DNA from: Ylistrum balloti
Lineage: Eukaryota
Reading direction: 5' to 3'
NCBI RefSeq assembly: GCF_031769215.1
Contig: NW_026782221.1
Location: 558,001-622,000, forward strand
DNA length: 64,000 nucleotides
The notes beneath the pieces are model-generated. The model made no database searches. It was not told the DNA's origin and saw only the letters and a list, made by a program, of their open reading frames with translations. This document shows positions 51,712 to 51,927 of the stretch, piece by piece. Made by a program: the position numbers and the translations under genes. How positions within the stretch are numbered: position 1 is the stretch's first letter; every line of letters starts with the position of its first letter.

Positions 51712-51777
51712 CTTGTTTGTGTAGTTGTTGCTGTTATGTGTTGTTAGTGGTCTCTCAGTGGATTGAATCCTCCATCA

Positions 51778-51927
51778 TAGATAAGTAGGCCGATACTATT
51801 TTCAGATAACTTTATTATCCAAAATGATGGAGGTCTGAAACATACAAAAAGTAACATTGTAAATAAAATCAACTATCTGTTGGTAAGACATAAGTAATAG
51901 ACTAACAAGTAAATACATAATCCTCTA
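51778..51927 (-). repeat. 5' LTR (150 bp)
   Basis: Base-for-base identical by eye to 46319-46468; contains AATAAA on the element strand. Confidence 0.93.

Follow-up and report, generated by a model that had tools for sequence, protein, structure and literature searches.

Probable Tf1-type self-priming of reverse transcription in a chromodomain-less Ty3/gypsy retrotransposon of the scallop Ylistrum balloti and its relatives

Self-priming of reverse transcription has been shown for the long terminal repeat (LTR) retrotransposon Tf1 and is implicated for Tj1 and for other fungal and vertebrate elements (PMC4600332, PMC6934838). Moreover, it has been predicted from sequence for vertebrate Sushi elements, for the Tcn1 clade of non-seed plants and for the plant TAR elements (Houba, Osr-1) of the Ty1/copia group (PMC6317226). 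In the literature that we searched, self-priming is regarded as peculiar to Tf1/Sushi-type chromoviruses and to a small number of lineages in plants, and we found in it no report tying self-priming to invertebrate Ty3/gypsy elements; a mollusc survey in which 16 new 'MolGy' clades were defined has no discussion of primer sites (PMC6238403). Here we describe an LTR retrotransposon of the scallop Ylistrum balloti that lies on the minus strand of a 64,000-nt window (the whole stretch of DNA that was analysed; NCBI RefSeq assembly GCF_031769215.1, contig NW_026782221.1, forward-strand positions 558,001 to 622,000; coordinates below are those of the window). It is, very probably, a very young member of the Ty3/gypsy superfamily whose reverse transcription is self-primed, as that of Tf1 is. 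The original prediction, made from these letters alone, had raised the prospect of an undescribed replication system; we find instead the known Tf1 type of mechanism, for which a chromodomain-less Ty3/gypsy clade is a new carrier.

The element spans positions 46319-51927 (5609 bp) of the minus strand. Self-BLAST shows that its 5′ LTR (51778-51927) and 3′ LTR (46319-46468) are 100% identical over 150 bp, and their ends, read from sequence, are TAGAGG and TATCTA on the element strand, i.e. the TA...TA termini noticed at the outset. A 5-bp target-site duplication, ATTTC, flanks it on the 5′ side (51928-51932) and on the 3′ side (46314-46318). The primer-binding site (PBS) ATGATGGAGG runs from 51778 to 51769 on the minus strand, its first base A being the last base of the LTR. 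It is the exact 10-nt complement of a stretch within the LTR, CCTCCATCAT (51833 to 51824, LTR positions 95-104), from which it is separated by 45 nt. Hence the complementarity described originally stands, as do the TATTTA-like box upstream of it and the AATAAA downstream. The TATA-like box TATTTA (51860-51865) lies 27-32 nt upstream of the LTR 10-mer and approximately 29-31 nt upstream of the predicted transcript start, which would be A51836 or A51834 within an initiator-like TCAGA (51834-51838; context TTTCAGACC). The AATAAA poly(A) signal (51811-51816) starts 8 nt past the 10-mer and falls in the loop between the complementary stretches. From the positions of TATA box, initiator and AATAAA, the U3 segment of the 5′ LTR would cover approximately 51927-51837, R would begin at about 51836 or 51834, and U5 would comprise the last 15-25 nt.

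This layout suggests a route to priming. The transcript would begin at A51836 or A51834 of the initiator-like TCAGA in the 5′ LTR, approximately 30 nt past the TATA-like box. Its first 10-13 bases would fold back over the 45-nt R-U5 loop and pair, presumably within one RNA rather than between two, with the PBS, whose first base is the last of the LTR. Ribonuclease H (RNase H) of the element would then cut after ..CAU and free a 3′ OH, from which minus-strand DNA would begin. Later, plus-strand strong-stop DNA would copy the short RNA primer and so rewrite the PBS from LTR sequence, which would hold both stretches complementary while they drift.

Could ten complementary letters have arisen by chance? 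Recomputing the figure of about 1 in 7000 given in the original prediction returned the same value (150/4^10) for a match anchored at the LTR end. For an unanchored measure we took the longest exact inverted repeat with a loop of 20-130 nt in the 420 nt upstream of the gag start. Repeats of at least 10 nt were found in 3.0% of 1060 shuffles of the 420-nt upstream windows, and the figure for 288 real windows of coding sequence at those loci was 4.9%. A repeat of this length is thus seen in 3-5% of unanchored control windows, and this is what can be said for coincidence. Against it stand the anchored expectation and the recurrence of the same architecture, in other letters, among relatives of the element. 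A word search with an 834-residue part of pol returned more than 2000 relatives, the best of which (60-72% identical) came from Mytilus edulis and from many marine metagenome contigs of about 5 kb. The scan of metagenome contigs, in which the gag start was located by tblastn, gave 80 loci at 45-79% pol identity, and 53 related loci were evaluated for the inverted repeat. A repeat of 10-19 nt, most commonly 15 nt, was present in 48 of these 53, drawn from the mussel genome and marine metagenomes. The comparative data therefore refute a chance match in the scallop element, to which we attach practically no probability.

The letters of the helix change from family to family while the pairing is kept. 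There are 36 different arms of at least 10 nt, with all four types of Watson-Crick pair seen at positions 4-10, and pairing drops to background level past position 15. In 15 relatives with two LTRs, whose LTR pairs were set by self-BLAST independently of the search for inverted repeats, the last base of the LTR is also precisely the first base of the downstream arm; a good many of these relatives carry matching 5-bp duplications. LTRs measure 108-330 bp in most families and, in the scallop element and its relatives, start with TAGAG or TACAG and end with ..TTTA or ..TCTA. A mussel locus (L083) illustrates the closest comparison: it has identical 108-bp LTRs with ends as in the scallop element, a 5-bp duplication and 11 pairs between LTR ..TTTCAG ATCTCCATCAT.. 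and PBS A|TGATGGAGAT, and it differs from the scallop helix by one compensated pair (C-G to T-A). Two permuted contigs show very different letters, namely AGACCTTGTTCAT with A|TGAACAAGGTCT and CGTTCGCTCGTCAT with A|TGACGAGCGAACG. Moreover, compensation can be seen within one family from assembly WLWD01 (L098, L099, L102, L104, L108, L112, L119, L124 and L163), where LTR ..AGTTATAC.. goes with site ..GTATAACT and LTR ..AGTTGTAC.. with ..GTACAACT. One helix pair is A-T in three copies and G-C in five, whilst in the remaining copy, L163, the two arms disagree, as though the LTR had already changed and the PBS had yet to follow. The self-priming reading is thereby strengthened on the very point that the original prediction had put forward, that related elements should keep the complementarity while its letters change.

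Two loci (L084, L085) have no recognisable LTR or PBS. None of the Logan contigs of the relatives represents a transcript: one is a unitig closed into a circle by a 30-nt overlap of its ends, and the others are broken inside the LTR. Three contigs of the clade (L086, P0008 and P0024) are filed under bacterial symbionts, Candidatus Thiodiazotropha endolucinida and the Escarpia laminata endosymbiont, and are most likely host DNA carried into those bins.

The limits of the helix are also informative. The upstream arm starts with AG in 17 of the 36 families, in 14 of them directly after C (TC|AG), which resembles an initiator; in the closest relatives (mussel L083, and also L116 and L148) the 11-nt arm starts at the A after TTTCAG, the position equivalent to A51834. 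At its other end the upstream arm finishes with ..CAT, followed by tg in most families, and this conserved ..CAT|tg is the sole, indirect hint of where RNase H may cut. In 30 of 32 families the minimum-free-energy fold from arm to arm retains the arm helix. For the 97-nt 5′ RNA predicted for the scallop element the folding energy is -22.1 kcal/mol (z = -2.6), and the fold contains the 10-bp helix and an inner stem. Families with short loops have their poly(A) signals in the loop.

Such a hairpin might be kept for packaging, dimerisation, or the control of translation or polyadenylation, with priming taking some other route. The AATAAA within the loop would allow use of the poly(A) signal at the 5′ end to be modulated, and the case for priming is a sequence-based one. 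However, no alternative primer site adjoins the LTR, minus-strand DNA must start right after U5 for the LTR end to be as seen, and the ends of the helix coincide with the predicted RNA start and with the LTR end. Moreover, the part common to a set of chimeric copies, described below, stops where the helix stops. We consider this explanation unlikely.

A more conventional alternative is that the primer is a host tRNA, a tRNA half or another small RNA, and that the match to the LTR is incidental; the 3′ end that such a competing RNA would carry is ..CCUCCAUCAU. In 33 of the 36 families no TGG lies within 8 nt of where the LTR ends, though the scallop leader does have one 3 nt past the LTR. Priming by a tRNA at this offset (TGG AGG ATT...) was considered and rejected, as no genomic tRNA gene fits. 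ARAGORN identified 45 tRNA genes (19 distinct sequences) in 30 loci found with Rfam RF00005, and neither these 19 sequences nor pattern searches of the whole genome gave a tRNA match of at least 10 nt. A genome search with the 19 nt after the LTR, taken as a tRNA 3′ end, returned only the element's own copies and chance matches, so that the 16-19 nt after the LTR fit no genomic tRNA 3′ end beyond chance. The 10-mer was found near a B-box-like motif 9 times, against 2 for a reversed control, and none of these matches looked tRNA-like by eye. Among the tRNAs the best complement was found in the anticodon arm of tRNA-Gln(UUG), which matches 51754-51762 over 9 nt (+7 to +15 on the element strand, counted from the LTR); the screen that gave it was incomplete, as set out below, and tRNA-Gln-like hairpins are mentioned in a paper on bivalve terminal-repeat retrotransposons in miniature (PMC6934838). 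We rejected a tRNA-Gln half as primer, since this complement starts 7 nt away from the LTR and occurs in only 2 of the 36 families. Above all, the PBS differs in nearly every family yet always fits that family's own LTR, and therefore a conserved host RNA cannot explain it. Half-tRNA-primed elements, such as copia and Ty5, likewise have a primer site without the usual TGG start; this site corresponds to the interior of a conserved tRNA, which keeps it constant from family to family, whereas the scallop-clade site varies with the LTR. The plant elements Osser and Bianca also belong to this group (PMC6317226). Plus-strand strong-stop DNA of tRNA-primed retroelements reaches 18 nt past the LTR, against the 10-11 nt common to the chimeric copies. 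A host primer is accordingly very improbable, and the outcome of the tRNA screen, incomplete as it was, agrees with the self-priming originally proposed.

The chimeric copies came from the scallop genome itself. The 648-Mb assembly holds 22 junctions between 5′ LTR and leader, most of them from copies that are 99-100% identical, and the PBS/LTR pair is unchanged in at least 18; copies as alike as these are unable to reveal covariation. In the element of the window an untranslated leader (51712-51768) joins the PBS to the gag ATG. Four of the 22 junctions lack the normal leader and consist of the LTR, ATGATGGAGG and a T, followed by host sequence that differs from copy to copy. The four chimeras are L019 (contig C1028), L020/L023 (C888), L021 (C194) and L022 (C58), with host sources L076, L068, L074 and L064. 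Their host pieces are 54-166 nt long and are present elsewhere in the genome as single loci or as another repeat. The element resumes at position 222 in L019, at 2482 in L021 and at 5036 in L020, and in L022 only in the last 34 nt of U5. Target duplications are present in three of the four (CTTAT in L019, TTTTC in L020, GTATT in L022). There is short similarity at the switch into host sequence: L019 has CTTC there, and L021 an imperfect match of about 22 nt. Where normal copies have A, the chimeras have their T, which is complementary to A51834, extends the self-primer stretch to 11 nt in these copies and would fit a copied first base of the primer. The chimeras would thus fit plus-strand strong-stop DNA whose primer copy measured no more than 10-11 nt.

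On the simplest reading, these copies arose by a template jump in three steps. Minus-strand complementary DNA (cDNA) would move from the element RNA to a host RNA, run on it to an end or a block, and then be joined to the 3′ end of plus-strand strong-stop DNA. If so, strong-stop DNA would extend 9-10 nt past the LTR, to the point where the complementarity stops. We rejected microhomology of the strong-stop end with the host pieces as an explanation of the junctions, because the bases that precede the pieces (..AC) do not match ..GGT. All four host pieces begin right after T-N-A-C (ctacTAAC|, cactTAC|, cagTCAC|, ttctTAC|) and 9-17 nt before the next AG, which in L064 is the 3′ splice site of an esterase-like exon. 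T-N-A-C resembles the branch-point consensus, with the copied part starting 2 nt after the A, and would fit a reverse transcriptase (RT) that stopped at a lariat branch. It is less likely that the host pieces are limited on their 5′ side by transcription starts, given that an internal exon follows 7 nt after the start of one of them and that the base at -2 is A in all four.

A number of points weigh against self-priming. The T of the chimeras could be an untemplated base. None of the 18 normal copies carries the T expected from a full copy of an 11-nt primer, so normal replication must copy a shorter stretch of the primer or lose the base. Pairing in the scallop element amounts to just 10 nt, leaving one 5′ base (A51834 start) or three (A51836 start) unpaired, and the predicted transcript start is drawn from promoter geometry only. 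The tRNA set was partial, covering five anticodon families (Thr, Arg, Lys, Gln) together with the pattern searches. Lastly, perfect complementarity could in part reflect copying of the primer rather than selection, which is an outcome that self-priming itself predicts.

With respect to classification, the element carries the features of Ty3/gypsy (Metaviridae) elements, namely the order protease-RT-RNase H-integrase, a pair of LTRs, a polypurine tract and a 5-bp duplication. A single gag-protease-RT-RNase H-integrase frame occupies 47074-51711 on the minus strand and is broken by one in-frame stop (49594-49596), which divides it into two open frames in the same reading frame. The downstream one (47074-49578) carries RT, RNase H, the H2C2 zinc finger and the integrase core, and the other (49594-51711) gave weak protease and zinc-knuckle signals and nothing more. 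Several other genomic copies have an uninterrupted gag-pol frame of approximately 1673 codons. Sequences were used unmended throughout, save that for one search the frame was read through with X at the stop. Pfam matches were RVT_1, RT_RNaseH, RT_RNaseH_2, Integrase_H2C2 and rve, with a weak aspartyl protease upstream, and the best relative of solved structure is Ty3 Gag-Pol (E = 3.8e-29). The polypurine tract GGGGAGGGA (46469-46477) adjoins the 3′ LTR, where relatives have ..GGGGGGAGA. No Chromo match was present in the last 228 residues even at E <= 5, and none of 120 listed homologues has a chromodomain among its precomputed Pfam domains. In a pol alignment of 11 clade members the RT has an invariant APQGY.ASGD and, further on, C-I-D-D; most Ty3/gypsy RTs have PFG and YxDD where the clade has PQGY and CIDD. 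A motif search in the supplements of the mollusc survey gave no match (PMC6238403).

Like the scallop element, Tf1/Tf2 of Schizosaccharomyces pombe and Tj1 of S. japonicus lack a tRNA site and have, after the 5′ LTR, a site that complements the 5′ stretch of their own mRNA; they too encode a polyprotein in a single frame and have a foldback helix with extra pairing inside the loop. The scallop clade, in contrast, has no chromodomain, lives in marine animals and has LTRs with TA...TA rather than TG...CA ends. Its helix is 10-19 nt long and always includes the last LTR base, whereas that of Tf1 is 11 nt, and the basis also differs from that for Tf1, in that the RNase H cut of the scallop element is predicted from its sequence. 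For Sushi, Tcn1 and TAR elements the inference is of the same kind, i.e. a PBS complementary to the element's own LTR and no tRNA match, but those are Tf1-related chromoviruses or copia elements, whereas the scallop clade is chromodomain-less with PQGY/CIDD and TA termini, and no mention of it came up in the literature searched. The TGT...ACA ends of the Tf1/Sushi clade are absent from the element and its relatives; the Sushi LTR motif is TGTYANR...CNTNACA (PMC3601003, Table 3).

Within bivalves, a further comparison is with Steamer and the Steamer-like elements of the Mag lineage. They resemble the scallop element in belonging to Ty3/gypsy, in a length of about 5 kb, in having one gag-pol frame and short LTRs (177-187 bp in theirs), and in a target duplication of 5 bp. 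Steamer LTRs start with TGTAACA and end with ..AAACA, followed by a 12-nt tRNA-Leu site (PMC8905726), and MchSLE1 has a tRNA-Asn site (PMC11046912). The original prediction called the element Mag-like; the scallop clade differs in its TA ends and self-complementary PBS from the TGT..ACA ends and tRNA-type PBS of Steamer and Mag (PMC3601003 Table 3, PMC8905726).

We tentatively link these observations into a broader proposal, which we regard as possible but rather doubtful as a whole. Self-priming may have arisen or been kept in a large chromodomain-less clade of marine invertebrates independently of Tf1/Sushi, with the PBS being continually rewritten; in the chimeras, cDNA would have jumped to host RNA, stopped 2 nt short of the A of TNAC at a lariat and been joined to strong-stop DNA. 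Self-priming appears to be the rule in a widespread and active clade of animal retrotransposons with a different integrase tail and different LTR ends, which bears on the evolution of priming modes. Moreover, it offers annotation pipelines an explanation for the failure of these elements to pass TG..CA and tRNA-PBS filters. More than 30 natural compensatory variants are at hand for the study of recognition by RT and RNase H, and the chimeras offer a rare natural record both of the point at which strong-stop DNA stops and of jumps to host RNA as template.

The insertion in the window is recent. A contig from sequencing run X1 bridges the empty site (joint 46311 to 51926, with 7 bases common at the joint), showing that the insertion is polymorphic and very recent; the sequencing contigs also showed diverged copies in a second organism. 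A protein 99% identical to the element's pol is recorded from Ylistrum balloti. Old single copies (L012, L017) have point changes in just one of the two arms, uncompensated in its partner, as expected of decay after insertion. At 49% identity, the nearest distinct family of the scallop genome lies on contig C668, whose start truncates it. Elsewhere in the window, at approximately 55300-58200, lies a long tandem array of about 85 copies of a 34-nt unit, with 90-97% identity in its core.
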